64,000 nucleotides of DNA, taken from the sequence record MK568540.2; one strand, given 5' to 3'. A model generated the notes under the pieces. That model was not told where the DNA came from. It did not search any database and saw only the letters and a list, made by a program, of their open reading frames with translations. Of this stretch, positions 31,710 to 49,303 are shown piece after piece; within the stretch, counting starts at the first letter, position 1, and each line of letters opens with the position of its first letter. The position numbers and the translations under genes were made by a program.

Positions 31710-32147
31710 CTACTTAACGTATCCCCACTCAAGGAAATATCCCTCGGTGAAGAGTTGTTTAGCAAGTACAACTTGACTGATCACATGATAACGCTCATCG
31801 TCGTTTGAAATTTCACTTGAATAGTCGCGAGACTCTTGATGCGATTTTGCATAATTCTCGACAATCGTAACCCAATCGCCTGAGTTGATTACGCTGACGT
31901 GCTCGGGACATGCGCGATAGATTTTAACTTTCGCATTCGGGTTTCCGTGACAGCGTTTGATGATTTGATACGCCTCGCGCTCATCGCGATCATTGTGATT
32001 GCCGTACCATCGTAGACCGTTCGCTTCGTATACATCTTCAGGGAATGTTCCCGTCAATGAGATATCGTACAGCGGGCTGTCATCAGGAGGTGACGGCGCT
32101 CGGTGTTGCATGTGATATTCGCTCAAAAATTCAGTGTAAGTTTTCAT
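31710..32147 (-). CDS. Predicted internal head protein with ADP-ribosyltransferase-like domain
   Basis: Leader MKTYTEFLSE (T4 IPII/III leader is MKTYQEFIAE); KIYRA...INSGDWVT...YAKSH...EWGY. Confidence 0.6.
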   Translation of the reverse strand: MKTYTEFLSEYHMQHRAPSPPDDSPLYDISLTGTFPEDVYEANGLRWYGNHNDRDEREAYQIIKRCHGNPNAKVKIYRACPEHVSVINSGDWVTIVENYAKSHQESRDYSSEISNDDERYHVISQVVLAKQLFTEGYFLEWGYVK

Positions 32148-41171: not shown

Positions 41172-41819
41172 TTATTTTGTCCAAACTACCGAAGCACCTG
41201 AACCAGATTTCTTGTAACCGTACTTTGAAAGGTCTGGAATACGTTGAAAGCTGTCTTTCGCTGTAACTACACCGCGAGTAGCAATTTCTTTAGCCACGTC
41301 TCTTGTTGCATTACCTGCTTCAATCTGCATAGACAGATCTGGATATTCTTGAGCAATGAATTGCATCATGATATCGTTTTTGCTTTTACCACTGATCACG
41401 TTCAACACAGTTTGAGTAATGTCAGTACCGCGAGTGATATGGAAAACTTTACCACGAGCACGAGACTCAACATCACGAATAATCTCTGCTTCGACTTCTT
41501 CAGGTACAACGTTCAGTACGTAAGAAGTAAACGCCGTATCGAATGATTCCCCATTTGGGATAGTCAGACTGACATCAGTCCAACCATCAGCAGATGTACC
41601 ATTGAATTTGTCATATGCATACGTTTTGATGCCTTCAGAGCGTAAAAATTCAGCGTTACGACCGTATTTACCAGCACCATAGTCAAGAGCAGTACCACCC
41701 GGTGTAAACATACCTTTCTTGTATAGTTTAACCAGTGCTGCTACTTCTTTACCACGTATCGACGTTGCTGCGGAACTGTACTTTTGTACTTCAGTTAAAA
41801 ATTCACCAAATTTCTTCAT
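41172..41819 (-). CDS. Class I SAM-dependent methyltransferase with capsid-targeting-like leader
   Basis: MKKFGEFLTE; motif I ALDYGAG, AYDKF, DTAFTSYVLNVV. Confidence 0.7.
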   Translation of the reverse strand: MKKFGEFLTEVQKYSSAATSIRGKEVAALVKLYKKGMFTPGGTALDYGAGKYGRNAEFLRSEGIKTYAYDKFNGTSADGWTDVSLTIPNGESFDTAFTSYVLNVVPEEVEAEIIRDVESRARGKVFHITRGTDITQTVLNVISGKSKNDIMMQFIAQEYPDLSMQIEAGNATRDVAKEIATRGVVTAKDSFQRIPDLSKYGYKKSGSGASVVWTK

Positions 41820-41826
41820 TGTGCAC

Positions 41827-43272
41827 CTACTTAATATCAATATCAATCAGATAGTTCGTTGCGTTAACGCTGAACTCAATCAAAGTACCGTCAACCGAAA
41901 CGTCAACGCCGTTTTCAACGATGTTTTCCATCATCGAGTAAAGTGTTTCTTGATCAAGCATCGCTTCAGAGAAAGATTGACCAACCTTGAATGAACTGAA
42001 CTGATCATTTGCAAGAGCACGAATCAGTGAATCAACATCATCAACCATTTCAGTCACTGGACGTAGACTAGACATGATATTCGGGTGGAATACACGATTC
42101 GACTCAGCCATTGTTGAAAATGCAGTCACTGTTTGACGCTCAGGGGTAACACAACCATCGAACGATAGCATAGCTTCAGCAAATGCTTTACAGTCAAAAC
42201 GTTTCACGCCTTTACGTTCCATCATCGCAATCATATCAAGAAGCGGGTAACCTGCTTCAGATAATTCAACGCGATATTCTTCACACACACGACCTGCACG
42301 CATAGCATGTTCCGCGTTTGTTAGAACAATACTTGTGTTGTTGTGTTTCAGCTTCCAACCGTTGTCAAAATACGCTTCTTTCACATCAACAAGATTTTGC
42401 CATGCAGTCGATGTCAGTGGCGCAGTCGCGATTTCTTTCGTGAAAACGTTCTGAGCATGTTCAATCATGGTGATGTTCTGTTTCAGATCGTATGCTTTGA
42501 ATCCTTCTAGCATCGGCAAGCCAGTATCGTCTTTACGTTCACGAGCGTATGATACGTCTTTCGCTTCTTTTACAATGAACAAGTCCATGATTTTACGGTT
42601 CAGTGCAGCCAATGTCAGTGCATTTTTACCAGACTTGATTTTCATCTCAGTGATGTCAGACAGTTCAGCTTTTGAGTCAACCGATTCAACAGTCACATAA
42701 ACGTCACCAAGCTCGATGTTTTCAGCCATTGACAGTACTTCGGAGGCTGAATTGTCGTCGATTGATAGCGATTCAATTACAAGCTTATCAGAATCAGCAA
42801 GATTAATTTTCATTTCACGCATAGGGAAAACAACGTGAATGTCATTTTTCTTATAACCAAGCTTAGTCGCTTCAGCAACAACTTGATCTAAGTAACCGCC
42901 TTTAATCACGATGCTAGGAAGACGCGCTTCAGTACACATGATCATAGACTTAACTTGCTGTAGCTCATGTGCTGGCAATGATAAGAATTCGTTTTCCATA
43001 AGCAAGTTGATTGTGCTTACGTTCTCGCTCAGATTGATATCGAAGTTTTTCTCATCGACGTTTTTATCTTCAGCAAGTTTAGTACTCATGATAGATTTAA
43101 GCTCATTTGCCTTTTCCATCATGCCGATAGTTGTTTCAACGCCTTTGCCTTTGCTGAACTCAGTAGATGCAGTGCCTAGCTCAACAATAACTTGACCAAA
43201 CTTAGGGTAGATTTTACCACCCTGAGTTTGACGGCGATTTTCACTCAGAAATGAGTCAAAGTTACCTAACAT
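41827..43272 (-). CDS. Large hypothetical protein, predicted internal head protein
   Basis: Leader MLGNFDSFLSE; GGKIYPKFGQVIV segment. Confidence 0.5.
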   Translation of the reverse strand: MLGNFDSFLSENRRQTQGGKIYPKFGQVIVELGTASTEFSKGKGVETTIGMMEKANELKSIMSTKLAEDKNVDEKNFDINLSENVSTINLLMENEFLSLPAHELQQVKSMIMCTEARLPSIVIKGGYLDQVVAEATKLGYKKNDIHVVFPMREMKINLADSDKLVIESLSIDDNSASEVLSMAENIELGDVYVTVESVDSKAELSDITEMKIKSGKNALTLAALNRKIMDLFIVKEAKDVSYARERKDDTGLPMLEGFKAYDLKQNITMIEHAQNVFTKEIATAPLTSTAWQNLVDVKEAYFDNGWKLKHNNTSIVLTNAEHAMRAGRVCEEYRVELSEAGYPLLDMIAMMERKGVKRFDCKAFAEAMLSFDGCVTPERQTVTAFSTMAESNRVFHPNIMSSLRPVTEMVDDVDSLIRALANDQFSSFKVGQSFSEAMLDQETLYSMMENIVENGVDVSVDGTLIEFSVNATNYLIDIDIK

Positions 43273-43281
43273 GTTAATTCC

Positions 43282-43794
43282 TTAATCGTAAAATTTCTGT
43301 AAGTTAAGTGGTTCTTTCTGTTCATCTGGTTGAGCTTTAGCAGTCTTGCCAGATTCGTAAGAATTGACACGTTCTAACATCTGTTGAAGAAAATCGAAAT
43401 CAGTTTCTTCACCATCAATCGAGTAGTTAGACGAATCACATAAGAATACTTTATATTTAATCGCTGTATCTTTTCTTTCTTTCTTAATACGTTGTACAAA
43501 CGCATTGAAGCAAATACGAGTGATATAAGCGTGTGGGTTGTTATACTTGTCAGTGTCGAAGTTCTTGATATAGCGCAAGCAATGTTCAATCGCGTCACCG
43601 ATCATCTCTTCTTTCCATGTTGCAGTATACCCACTAAAATTGTAACGGCGAGATAAATTCTCGCTGATCTTCATGATGCTGATTGCTACCACGTCAGGGA
43701 CGGGAATTGCAGCATCAGGGTGTTTCTTCATTTCGTTTTTCCATTCGCACAAAGATGCGTACAGAGCTTTATTATCTACATAATGATTTTTCAT
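43282..43794 (-). CDS. 55: Late-transcription sigma factor
   Basis: HYVDNKALY, IMKISENLS, NFSGYT..WKEEMIGDA, NPHAYITRICFNAFVQRIKKE. Confidence 0.97.
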   Translation of the reverse strand: MKNHYVDNKALYASLCEWKNEMKKHPDAAIPVPDVVAISIMKISENLSRRYNFSGYTATWKEEMIGDAIEHCLRYIKNFDTDKYNNPHAYITRICFNAFVQRIKKERKDTAIKYKVFLCDSSNYSIDGEETDFDFLQQMLERVNSYESGKTAKAQPDEQKEPLNLQKFYD

Positions 43795-43802
43795 GTCACA
43801 CC

Positions 43803-44702
43803 TTATACCGTTACTGCGTGAGTGTATGACAGCTTAGAACTGTTCGCAAGAACACCAAGATTATCCCAGTCGATTTCAACTGCACCCGTTTGATTGTCTT
43901 CTAATGGGGCTACGGTCAATGCGTATCGAGCAATCACACCGTAAATTGGGTGGAATGATTTTGAGTCTTGTGTTTTATATTGATATGCAATACCAGCGTC
44001 TGTTGCTTTGTCAAAGTTGTATGGGCTGAATACTAAACTTGAGATTTCATAATCACCAAGTTCTTTCTTAACACCAATTGTTACGTAGTCAGTCGTTGCA
44101 TACTTGTCATGAACTAGATATAACCCAGAGTCACATTTATACATGCTAGTATCACCAATCTGTGTAGCCATACCAGTGCCCGTCAATAGACCAAATGCTT
44201 CACCACCTGCTACGATATATGTACCTGTACAACCCGTTGACTTTTCAATCTCAGCAGCAGATGCATGGACGAACGAGTATAATTCTCGACCTTTATCAAA
44301 ACGGTTAGTAATAGCAGATAGCGTAATTGCACTACCAACAGTTGAAATACTGTTTAGTGCATCGATGATATTAGTGTTGATGTCATCTGCGATTTGATCA
44401 GCAATAGAATCTGTGATAATCGATTCATTGACACCAAGTGCTTGCATGTCTTGAATTGTTTCAAGTGAGATTTCAGTTTTTAGCTTTGATGATTGAACTT
44501 GTGCATACCAGCGATCAAGTCTAAAACCATGTGGCAGCCACCCACTCGCGTCATCAGCTTCAGCTACAGATTTGAAACCGAACGCAGTCGCAACCGGTTG
44601 AGTTGTTGGCTGTTCTGAAACGATTTGCGTAAATATTAACGGGTATAGTCGTTTTTGAACAGAAACAATGTCTGGTAAACCGTTACTATTAGATACAGTC
44701 AT
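43803..44702 (-). CDS. 24: gp23/gp24-family capsid (head vertex-like) protein
   Basis: IVSEQPTTQP, SSKLKTEISLETIQDMQA, IADDINTNII, LVFSPY, ARYAL; perfect TATAAATA at 44759-44766. Confidence 0.75.
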   Translation of the reverse strand: MTVSNSNGLPDIVSVQKRLYPLIFTQIVSEQPTTQPVATAFGFKSVAEADDASGWLPHGFRLDRWYAQVQSSKLKTEISLETIQDMQALGVNESIITDSIADQIADDINTNIIDALNSISTVGSAITLSAITNRFDKGRELYSFVHASAAEIEKSTGCTGTYIVAGGEAFGLLTGTGMATQIGDTSMYKCDSGLYLVHDKYATTDYVTIGVKKELGDYEISSLVFSPYNFDKATDAGIAYQYKTQDSKSFHPIYGVIARYALTVAPLEDNQTGAVEIDWDNLGVLANSSKLSYTHAVTV

Positions 44703-44757: not shown

Positions 44758-44997
44758 TTATTTATATGTCTGGTTATCAACCCATTGCTTGAGTTCTGGA
44801 AGATGACCTATGTATGTATCACCATGCATAGCAAGAGGCACGCGAATGTTGCGCACCCCACCAAGTTTCTCATGCAATTTATCGATATCAGATTGAGACT
44901 GTAACTCTATTACAGTGTACGGGACGTTTTTGAACTTACAGAGGGAAATTGCGTGACGACAGCCGTCACAGTTGGGAATTGTGTATATCGTTATCAT
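44758..44997 (-). CDS. Glutaredoxin
   Basis: IYTIPNCDGC, VP, YIG; class B promoter GTTTAA-N18-TATAAT at 45016-45045. Confidence 0.85.
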   Translation of the reverse strand: MITIYTIPNCDGCRHAISLCKFKNVPYTVIELQSQSDIDKLHEKLGGVRNIRVPLAMHGDTYIGHLPELKQWVDNQTYK

Positions 44998-45121: not shown

Positions 45122-45143
45122 AAAAAAAGCCCCTTTCGGGGCT
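45122..45143 (-). terminator. Rho-independent terminator
   Basis: AGCCCC-GAAA-GGGGCT followed by TTTTTT. Confidence 0.85.
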
Positions 45144-46760: not shown

Positions 46761-48389
46761 ATGATTGGATTTCAACAATTAAATGAAAACATGAGCGCAA
46801 CGTACGACTATTATCCGGCTCGCTCGACCAAAGAAAACAAATTCTTTGTGATCGACATGAAAGGCGAAGCCAGAGACATCGTTGTTTCGTTCACAACTAA
46901 AACAAAATCAGATATCGGAAATCGCGGTAAACGTTCTTGGTTCTGTACTGTATCAGCAATGCGCGGCAAAAAAGGCGGTGTTACTATTCGTGAAATGGGA
47001 GATGAACAAAAGCTTCAACAAACTATTGTTAAAGTGGTTCAAGATTTCATGATCAAACGTCGTGCGAATGTCGTTTCAATGCGTGTGCAGAAACTAGGTA
47101 CGGGTAAGATGTTCGACTTGCGCGTTAAAACGTTGTTTAAAAAGCTACGTTACGGCTGTGATACAACTAAGATTATTGGCGTGGGTGGTGAAGAAATTTC
47201 GCAAGATTACAGCTTCTTTATTGTAACCAAACCAGGGTATAATGCCGATAAGCTATTCGAAGCATCTGAAGAAACAATTAACGATATTGCGTTAAAAATG
47301 TCACTCGAAACTGATATTTCAAGCAAGAAAACGATTATCGTAACTGCCGATGCTGCGTATGACGACTATGAAGATGACGTACTAGGTAAATGGGTAGAAG
47401 AAAACCCCGCTGCACGTGTTCCAAATGATGTTCTTCAAATGCCTCAATATGAAGCGCGTGTAAGTTCGTCTGTTCGTTCTCAATTGAATGAAAGCAATGA
47501 ACATGTTCTTGCTAATGCTGCGAAAGGTTTAATTGATATGAGTTTGAATCTTGAAACTGTGGCAGTTTCATTGAATTCATATATCGCCGAATCGAAGAAG
47601 CCTCAAAGCGTTCTGAATAGTATCATGGAATCTCGCTCACGTGCTCATGCAAGTCAGTATGAACGTCTTTCTTTGCAACTTATGCAGGAAGATTCATTTG
47701 CGGGTCTATCGTCACTTACACAAGCGGCTATTGCTAGATACTCCGCGACTCGTTTTTCATGGAAGGTGAATGAAGAGTTATTACACGGAACTGGTGTTGA
47801 TAAAGAATCACAGATTGTCTCACGCATCGACCAAGCGTTTTCTGAAGCTGGTATGATTGCTGGTGGAATGACGTTATATCGTGGCTGTGAAATGTCAAGT
47901 AAACATGTGCGCTCTATTCTTGAATCTGGCTCGTTTGTTTCGACTGCGTTTATCTCAACGTCAATCGACCCTCTTGTTGCTTGTAAGTTCGTTGAATCAA
48001 GCTCTAAGAACATCATTGATTCAACTGCTAAGAATAGTAAATCAGATATGCGTTCTCTGCTTGAGTCAGATAAGAAAATGAATGTTGTATTCATCATAGA
48101 AGCGAGCGGCTTGCCTGTTTTAGCTTCAGGTAAACACGGTATGAAAGACTCAAAAGAGATTATCATCAACCGTAATACGATGTTTGAAGCTGACGTTGTT
48201 CAAATGTCTGAATACGACGCTGTAATTCGATTGAAAATCAAAGAAGATACGAAGCAAGGTGTATTGTCTGCTTTCAAAAAGCAAGACCGTTTACACGAGC
48301 TTTCAGAAGTAGCTAATTTCATGCGTTCTGTTGATGTAGATGTCGATGCAGATAGACTAACAAAAGAGCGTAGTCCTCTAACACCATGA
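46761..48389 (+). CDS. alt: Alt-like NAD:protein ADP-ribosyltransferase (R-S-E/VIP2 clade)
   Basis: TLYRG, FVSTAFISTS, SKEIII; leader MIGFQQLNE; late-like CATAAATA at 46722-46729. Confidence 0.75.
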   Translation: MIGFQQLNENMSATYDYYPARSTKENKFFVIDMKGEARDIVVSFTTKTKSDIGNRGKRSWFCTVSAMRGKKGGVTIREMGDEQKLQQTIVKVVQDFMIKRRANVVSMRVQKLGTGKMFDLRVKTLFKKLRYGCDTTKIIGVGGEEISQDYSFFIVTKPGYNADKLFEASEETINDIALKMSLETDISSKKTIIVTADAAYDDYEDDVLGKWVEENPAARVPNDVLQMPQYEARVSSSVRSQLNESNEHVLANAAKGLIDMSLNLETVAVSLNSYIAESKKPQSVLNSIMESRSRAHASQYERLSLQLMQEDSFAGLSSLTQAAIARYSATRFSWKVNEELLHGTGVDKESQIVSRIDQAFSEAGMIAGGMTLYRGCEMSSKHVRSILESGSFVSTAFISTSIDPLVACKFVESSSKNIIDSTAKNSKSDMRSLLESDKKMNVVFIIEASGLPVLASGKHGMKDSKEIIINRNTMFEADVVQMSEYDAVIRLKIKEDTKQGVLSAFKKQDRLHELSEVANFMRSVDVDVDADRLTKERSPLTP

Positions 48390-48421: not shown

Positions 48422-49303
48422 TTATCGAATATCTTCTAGTTCATAACCCCAGATATTACTAAAATCTTCTTCTGATTCGACGTAATACAATGTATCTTGC
48501 TCACATAAAATCATATCACCTGCATCAAGCGCCGCACCTTTTTCACTAATATCAAATGTACGACCTGTTTTAGTGCGAACTGTAATATCACCTAGCATTG
48601 ACAGCCAAATGTCAGCCGAATCTAAGTTATTGAACTTACCACGCGGAGTTGTTGCTTCAATGTGAATAACATCACTCGATTTTCGCTCTATGTAAACTCG
48701 ACCGTGTGGCAATCCAAATCGAATGAAATCTCCGTCGTTGTCTAACCAGAATAACTTAGCCCAAGTGAATGCGTTAGTATTTGGGAAAATAACGTACGTT
48801 AGTTCTTCTTCTTTGTGAATCCCGTCGTTATGCAGTCTGCGAACTTTCGGTGGGTTATTGTTCTTCAATGTGAAGCTATTTCCCATGACGTGAACCGTAT
48901 AGTCCATCTTGTTCGCGTATCGCTCAGCCATACGTTTGTACAGTCGGAAACGTTTGTCTGCATCATTGCGATCTTCATCTGAGTACGCACTAAACGCAAT
49001 CTCATCAGGGTTAATCTCAGACGCTTTTTCAAACGTAGCAGCTAGAATCGTACTTAATACTGTCATGGCATCTTTAGGCGATCCTTTTGCAAGCGTGTGC
49101 GTCCAATTGCCTGTTTCACGATCTTTTCGTTGGAAAGCTACATATATGCTTACACCGCGTGGCGTTTCGCGATCTTGAATCGTTGCTAGGTATTGGGTCC
49201 CGCCTACTGTGAAACTAGCTTCATTGTGCATAGCATCCCATCTATATGGCACTGGTCGGTCGAACGCTTCAATTAACGTTTCTCCATGTTCAAAAATGAT
49301 CAT
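48422..49303 (-). CDS. Predicted internal head protein, paralog family member
   Basis: Leader MIIFEHGETLIE; VLSTIL...IAFSAYSDEDRNDADKRFRLYKRM; perfect late promoter TATAAATA at 49328-49335. Confidence 0.65.
   Translation of the reverse strand: MIIFEHGETLIEAFDRPVPYRWDAMHNEASFTVGGTQYLATIQDRETPRGVSIYVAFQRKDRETGNWTHTLAKGSPKDAMTVLSTILAATFEKASEINPDEIAFSAYSDEDRNDADKRFRLYKRMAERYANKMDYTVHVMGNSFTLKNNNPPKVRRLHNDGIHKEEELTYVIFPNTNAFTWAKLFWLDNDGDFIRFGLPHGRVYIERKSSDVIHIEATTPRGKFNNLDSADIWLSMLGDITVRTKTGRTFDISEKGAALDAGDMILCEQDTLYYVESEEDFSNIWGYELEDIR

Follow-up and report, generated by a model that had tools for sequence, protein, structure and literature searches.

The internal proteins of phage T4 are the classic case of proteins injected together with phage DNA. 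Among the few with known roles, IPI* defeats host defences and Alt reprogrammes the host. The targeting signal is short: the first ten residues of T4 IPIII are enough for head targeting (PMC9026906, review). Within the IPIII leader, targeting depends mostly on residues 4 and 7 and processing on residues 8 and 10, and the prohead protease gp21 cleaves after L/I-x-E (PMC9026906). IPII and IPIII share the N-terminus MKTYQEFIAE, and IPI starts with MKTFKEF, as read from NC_000866.

A comparable leader precedes a predicted enzyme in a Vibrio phage. The window, a stretch of 64,000 nucleotides, represents bases 1–64000 of Vibrio phage Va3 (MK568540.2, 100% identity), a KVP40-type phage (Schizotequatrovirus) of the T4 family. 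Its gene Va3_068 probably codes for a small class I SAM-dependent methyltransferase that is carried in the phage head, ejected with the DNA and methylates a component of the host.

The Va3_068 gene

Positions 41172–41819 are exactly the annotated CDS Va3_068, including the stop codon. It is located on the minus strand, which was left unstated in the original prediction, and is annotated as a hypothetical protein in MK568540.2. The strings quoted in that prediction, MKKFGEFLTE, LDYGAG, YD and SYVLNV, are all present in the translation, the latter three within ALDYGAGKYG (residues 44–53), YAYDK (67–71) and TSYVLNVVP (98–106). Orthologues are KVP40.0066 and, in the sister phage 6E35.1a, VP6E351A_0103; the group is PHROG 14016 (unknown function). 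The ATG at 41819 is the true start, because AGGTG is located 5–9 nt upstream and all orthologues have the same start. A longer ORF, starting with TTG at 41846, overlaps the gene upstream of Va3_068.

41172..41819, minus strand: Va3_068 CDS, 215 aa, leader and predicted class I SAM methyltransferase (ORF and annotation, predicted model, fold matches)
41824..41828, minus strand: Shine–Dalgarno sequence AGGTG, part of TAGGTGCA, which is common to the leader-bearing Va3_053

Predicted methyltransferase domain

The AlphaFold model of Va3_068 has a pLDDT of 90.6 and a pTM of 0.86 and presents a Rossmann-like seven-strand fold, as in class I methyltransferases. A Foldseek search with this model yielded 247 PDB matches at E ≤ 0.001, all of them class I methyltransferases. 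The best 50 structural neighbours are small-molecule methyltransferases in a flat list with no stand-out. A sequence search for a close solved relative found none. Va3_068 alone has 15.5 bits (E 0.014) against Pfam Methyltransf_23, below the gathering threshold of 27. Among the 55 aligned sequences, 48 match Methyltransf_23 (E ≤ 0.01) and 8 match TehB, and some relatives are above the Pfam cut-off (e.g., P0246 at 35.7 bits). Sequence motifs were placed by alignment.

41757..41765, minus strand: invariant block T19-S20-I21, a family signature just past the predicted cleavage site (alignment)
41661..41690, minus strand: motif I ALDYGAGKYG, putative SAM-binding glycine loop with invariant D46, G48, A49 and G50, aligned with motif I of TehB
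41607..41621, minus strand: YAYDK with invariant D70 at the end of strand 2, the motif II acidic residue (alignment and model)
41502..41516, minus strand: LNVVP at the motif IV position, with invariant L102, N103 and V104, not of the DPPY type (alignment)

Invariance was counted over 55 sequences with identities to Va3_068 down to 34%. Family-specific invariants are T19-S20-I21, R54, L102-N103-V104, H127, R130 and Q192-R193. The SAM-dependent enzyme of the original prediction is supported by the modelled fold, the family-level Methyltransf_23 matches and the invariant SAM-binding residues D46, G48, A49, G50 and D70, which together place Va3_068 among the class I methyltransferases.

The same residues bear on a different role. 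A packaged Va3_068 might mainly be a structural or charge-balancing internal head protein, with a methyltransferase fold that has no catalytic role after injection. T4 IPII and IPIII are abundant and basic proteins without a known enzymatic role, and mature Va3_068 is also basic. Against this stands the invariance of D46, G48, A49, G50 and D70 together with T19, S20, I21, N103, H127, R130, Q192 and R193 in all 55 sequences. The pattern is typical of an active enzyme and makes a purely structural role most improbable.

The family is large. A word search detected 233 relatives with lengths close to that of Va3_068, all of them from phage records or metagenomes, and an exhaustive profile search found 131 clusters at E ≤ 1e-30, mostly of 200–240 aa. 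ESM Atlas and BFVD look-alikes are only unnamed viral methyltransferase clusters, and a plasmid search gave one weak partial match. The family was found only on viral DNA and is common in marine metagenomes. A few clusters are fused to GNAT, DUF5661 or long unknown regions. In the metagenomic relatives P0123 and P0140, an N-terminal GNAT acetyltransferase domain is fused to the methyltransferase. One 1110-aa relative (among P0123, P0140 and P0146) begins with the methyltransferase and continues for about 890 residues without known function. Distant relatives are located on large phage contigs with T4 hallmarks (SegE, T4 RNase H, Rnl1/Rnl2). No conserved neighbour gene was found across these contigs, so the gene context offers no clue to the substrate.

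DNA as a candidate substrate

A resemblance to the DNA-phosphorothioation-associated methyltransferases had been suggested for the motif pattern. The HMM search does not bear this out. Against TIGR04096 (dnd_rel_methyl), Va3_068 obtained 11.1 bits at a cut-off of 150 (E 0.12). The match is limited to residues 29–71, that is, 43 residues around motif I, and the model has 478 positions in comparison to the 215 aa of Va3_068. Membership in this family was rejected. A dnd neighbourhood is also missing: the neighbours of Va3_068 are gp24, gp55 and phage ORFs, and the contexts of the relatives are phage contigs.

The original prediction further suggested methylation of the incoming DNA. A packaged DNA methyltransferase could enter with the genome or act in the head and shield the phage DNA from restriction. 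The protein is virion-associated (shown for the orthologue) and mildly basic (pI 8.9), and it has the invariant arginines R54, R130 and R193. There is also a precedent in P1 DarB and the polyvalent proteins, packaged methylase-helicases that are predicted to modify injected DNA. With such systems already known or predicted, the claim that pre-packaged anti-restriction methylation is a novel strategy was overstated. The protein itself argues against a DNA methyltransferase. Va3_068 has LNVVP at the motif IV position and neither a (D/N/S)PP(Y/F/W) motif nor the C5 motifs (PC/ENV). The predicted mature protein of 205 residues has no target-recognition domain and no extra domain. DNA methyltransferases are absent from the best 50 solved structural neighbours. 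The identification of Va3_068 as a DNA methyltransferase was rejected on these three grounds.

[quoted passage not shown] DpdM (DUF3109) of VH7D, together with DpdA2, also formed this base in E. coli, and DpdM has a distinct fold (PMC10516641). Va3_068 has no DUF3109 match in Pfam, and its modelled fold is that of a class I methyltransferase. For DNA of phage nt-1, only dPreQ0 and dG+ were reported, and the DpdA2 of nt-1 did not insert preQ1; the Va3_068 gene shows the same degree of conservation in nt-1 and in KVP40. LC-MS of 6E35.1a DNA revealed dPreQ1 only. A role as dPreQ1-to-mdPreQ1 methylase was rejected: DpdM already accounts for the base, and the distribution of the gene does not track preQ1. 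Taken as a whole, a packaged DNA methyltransferase is quite unlikely.

The N-terminal leader

41790..41819, minus strand: capsid-targeting-like leader MKKFGEFLTE, codons 1–10, with a predicted gp21 cut after E10 (L8-T9-E10 / V11)

The leader of Va3_068 has M1, K2, an aromatic residue at position 4, E6, F7, L/I at position 8 and E10 in common with T4 IPII and IPIII. All four key positions of the IPIII leader are kept: F4, F7, L8 and E10. In nine Schizotequatrovirus orthologues, positions 2 (K), 4 (F/L), 7 (F/Y), 8 (L) and 10 (E) are constrained, with L8 and E10 invariant, and positions 3, 5, 6 and 9 vary freely. This conservation pattern agrees with the mutational map of T4.

A strict pattern, M-K-x-[FY]-x-E-F-[LIVMF]-x-E, was searched on both strands of the 247,567-bp Va3 genome, with the reversed pattern as control. 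Three matches were obtained versus none for the control. Each of them coincides with the initial ATG of an annotated ORF that has a ribosome-binding site, on a background of 1,842 ATGs with at least 60 codons downstream. The leader of Va3_068 thus exceeds chance expectation. The strict-leader ORFs are Va3_068 and two others:

31710..32147, minus strand: Va3_053, 145 aa, MKTYTEFLSE, the second strict-leader ORF in the window, unrelated to the methyltransferase
Genome 148272–148514, outside the window, plus strand: Va3_203, 80 aa, MKTFDEFITE, with a weak match to the PHROG 'internal head protein'

The leader of Va3_053 is the nearest match in the Va3 genome to the IPII/IPIII leader of T4. The body of this acidic protein (pI 5.3) matches phrog_2579 'ParB C-terminal domain', and 6E35.1a has no orthologue.

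Va3 also encodes a candidate processing enzyme.

Genome 102481–103020: gp21-type protease, Peptidase_S77 (328 bits, E 2.2e-99)

The genes for gp22, gp23 and gp68 adjoin the protease gene, and their products have N-termini with L-x-E. The N-termini of Va3 gp23, gp22 and gp21 read ...LLE, ...LLE and ...LIE. The kept IPIII key positions, a strict pattern that is rare in the genome and the gp21-type protease gene support the leader as the capsid-targeting signal of the original prediction, and as one of the T4 type. After cleavage, the predicted mature protein would start at V11 with VQKYSSAATSIR.

The leader appears to be a module apart from the methyltransferase fold. In the model, residues 1–8 have a pLDDT below 50 and residues 1–20 average 43–53, with values above 88 for the remainder; low confidence is confined to the leader region. 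The linker from the leader to the TSI block varies from about 8 to about 35 residues among relatives. In the fusion proteins P0122, P0123 and P0125, the leader is located at the extreme N-terminus, and the methyltransferase domain begins 140–220 residues later. On the metagenomic contig L041, the methyltransferase starts with MILRTLIQE and an unrelated gene directly upstream with MKLRDLLVE. These four observations together suggest a separable leader. By a loose rule, 84 of the 143 short family members (~59%) have a leader versus 49 of 381 background Va3 ORFs (13%). Within 20 kb around the gene in distant relatives, the same leader was found on other ORFs only in the L041 neighbour.

Detection in phage particles

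The particles of 6E35.1a were PEG-precipitated and analysed by tandem MS, which gave 94 proteins (PMC12028318, Table S4). The orthologue of Va3_068 in this phage is QZI87378.1 (VP6E351A_0103), with 79.9% identical amino acids. It was detected with 31 and 79 counts (PMC12028318, Table S4) and is given as a hypothetical protein in the particle proteome (PMC12028318). Its mean count ranks 22nd among the 94 proteins. By count per kDa it is 16th, behind 15 proteins that are all either structural or the Alt-like enzyme. Table S4 contains counts only, and the phage of the orthologue is a relative of Va3 (PMC12028318).

The other strong-leader ORFs of 6E35.1a are VP6E351A_0394 (MKTLQEFLAE), VP6E351A_0391 (MKTLAEFLGE) and VP6E351A_0357 (MKKLNTFMEE), and all are in the particles. 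This amounts to 4 of 4 strong-leader ORFs in comparison to 94 of 442 proteins overall (hypergeometric p = 0.002). 6E35.1a orthologues of Va3_203 and of a further leader-bearing Va3 ORF were detected in the particles:

Genome 172214–173323, outside the window, minus strand: 369-aa acidic protein, MKNLKSFMEE, phrog_11974

Two genes near Va3_068 also code for proteins with an L-x-E end in the N-terminus and with orthologues in the particles.

46761–48389, plus strand: Va3_075, Alt-like ADP-ribosyltransferase, MIGFQQLNE, 5 kb from Va3_068; orthologue with 122 and 233 counts
48422–49303, minus strand: Va3_076, neighbour of Va3_075, start MIIFEHGETLIE; orthologue with 16 and 61 counts

Detection may have a trivial cause. 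An ordinary cytoplasmic methyltransferase of the phage, with an amphipathic helix as N-terminus, could have been carried over from the lysate. The particles were precipitated without gradient purification, and the list includes some cytoplasmic enzymes. In addition, the loose leader rule also fits 13% of the background ORFs. Yet the recognisable carry-over (ssDNA-binding protein, dUTPase, thymidylate synthase, NAMPT and FolE) has at most 23 counts in Table S4, fewer than the 31 and 79 of VP6E351A_0103. The rank per kDa directly behind structural proteins and Alt, the detection of every strong-leader ORF and the agreement of leader conservation with the T4 map also argue against carry-over. Further points against it are that the leader does not pack on the fold in the model and that it stays N-terminal in fusion proteins. 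Carry-over is improbable as the explanation.

Packaging of Va3_068 is supported through its 80%-identical orthologue, found at the level of structural proteins in PEG-precipitated particles of a relative. The original prediction of a head protein gains from this detection.

A leader-like N-terminus is no guarantee of packaging. Va3_069, the gene next to Va3_068, starts with MLGNFDSFLSE, which is leader-like with one extra residue. It was considered as a second packaged protein and rejected: its orthologue VP6E351A_0102 is absent from the 94-protein particle list, a point that also speaks for carry-over of VP6E351A_0103. Va3_069 is marked 'Defense?' in the published gene table.

Gene string and probable late transcription

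Va3_068 is the last of four genes, gp24, gp55, Va3_069 and Va3_068, on one strand with gaps of 7–9 nt.

44759..44766, minus strand: late promoter box TATAAATA of the T4 type, located 57 nt before the ATG of gp24
43803..44702, minus strand: gp24, head vertex protein, first gene of the string; orthologue with 90 and 145 counts in particles
43282..43794, minus strand: gp55, late sigma factor, in the same tightly spaced string
41827..43272, minus strand: Va3_069, 481 aa, unknown function, ends 7 nt before Va3_068

By their spacing, Va3_069 and Va3_068 are probably co-transcribed. No terminator was found between the TATAAATA box and Va3_068. The box upstream of gp24 is likely the source of late transcripts that reach Va3_068. 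The genome-wide number of TATAAATA boxes is no higher than composition predicts, so the argument for a late promoter is one of position only. The methyltransferase gene on L041 is preceded by a TATAAATA box of its own, located 38 nt from the ATG and downstream of a terminator hairpin.

Some further features were observed around these genes. A strong intrinsic-terminator-like hairpin, AGCCCC-GAAA-GGGGCT with a T run, is located at 45128–45143 (minus strand) between Va3_073 and the glutaredoxin gene, upstream of the gp24 late promoter box. On L041 (7100–8001), a terminator hairpin and late-promoter-like boxes precede the methyltransferase and likewise its leader-bearing neighbour; upstream of the latter, ATAAATA boxes are repeated in a row. 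By orthologues, gp24, Va3_068, Va3_075 and Va3_076 are four particle proteins within 8 kb.

Proposed function

Transcription of Va3_068 would be late and most likely start at the TATAAATA box in front of gp24, with read-through of gp55 and Va3_069. Like the IPIII leader in T4, the leader MKKFGEFLTE may attach the protein to the scaffolding core while the prohead assembles. A gp21-type protease would cut after L8-T9-E10 and yield a 205-residue, 22.4-kDa enzyme with a pI of 8.9, which would be kept in the head with the DNA. At infection, the enzyme would be ejected together with the DNA and use host SAM to methylate a host component before phage genes are expressed.

The methylated component may be a host protein or RNA, a tentative assignment. 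A small molecule or nucleotide is a possibility held slightly more tentatively. DNA is an unlikely substrate, and very unlikely is the absence of any catalytic role. A more specific reading sees Va3_068 as a pre-loaded effector for counter-defence or takeover. It would enter with the DNA and, immediately and ahead of all phage gene expression, methylate a host target other than DNA, for example an RNA, a protein of a defence system or a nucleotide used in immune signalling. This reading is doubtful. If true, no injected methyltransferase effector would have been known before from a T4-type phage, and Va3_068 would define a family of enzymes, virus-only and with about 130 clusters at 50% identity, in such an effector role. 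KVP40-type phages have unusually broad host ranges, and pre-loaded enzymes are plausible contributors. Foreign proteins can be packaged with the T4 leader, and the ten-residue leader of Va3_068 might serve the same purpose for the heads of Vibrio phages.

Comparison with known systems

Among small-molecule class I methyltransferases, TehB, Rv0560c of Mtb (heterocyclic-toxin methyltransferase), UbiG and similar enzymes share 12–19% identical amino acids with Va3_068. They have no counterpart of the invariant blocks TSI, HITR and FQR of the Va3_068 family.

P1 DarB and the polyvalent methylase-helicase dyad resemble Va3_068 as virion proteins with a methyltransferase fold and an N-terminal loading signal, which are thought to act at DNA entry. 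DarB is a 250-kDa protein, in which a DNA adenine methylase similar to EcoKI and TaqI is fused to an SF2 helicase and LPD36. In contrast, Va3_068 is a single TehB-like domain of 215 aa without DNA-methylase motifs, and the packaging signals are unrelated.

T4 Alt is a host-modifying ADP-ribosyltransferase, which is packaged in the head, is processed by gp21 and reaches the host at infection. Va3_068 may take the same route. The chemistry differs: Alt transfers ADP-ribose from NAD, whereas Va3_068 would transfer a methyl group from SAM. The folds are unrelated, and the targets of Alt are known.

The T4 internal proteins share with Va3_068 the ten-residue leader (MKTYQEFIAE versus MKKFGEFLTE), the L/I-x-E site for gp21, the T4-type phage and, through the orthologue, the presence in particles. 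Cleavage and ejection of Va3_068 are predicted, and its body has no homology to any T4 internal protein. With its 205-residue enzyme fold, the cargo differs from small basic proteins and from restriction inhibitors like IPI*. SAM-dependent methylation would add a new chemistry to the cargo of this route. What is new is the type of cargo, a methyltransferase, on a delivery route already known from the T4 internal proteins.
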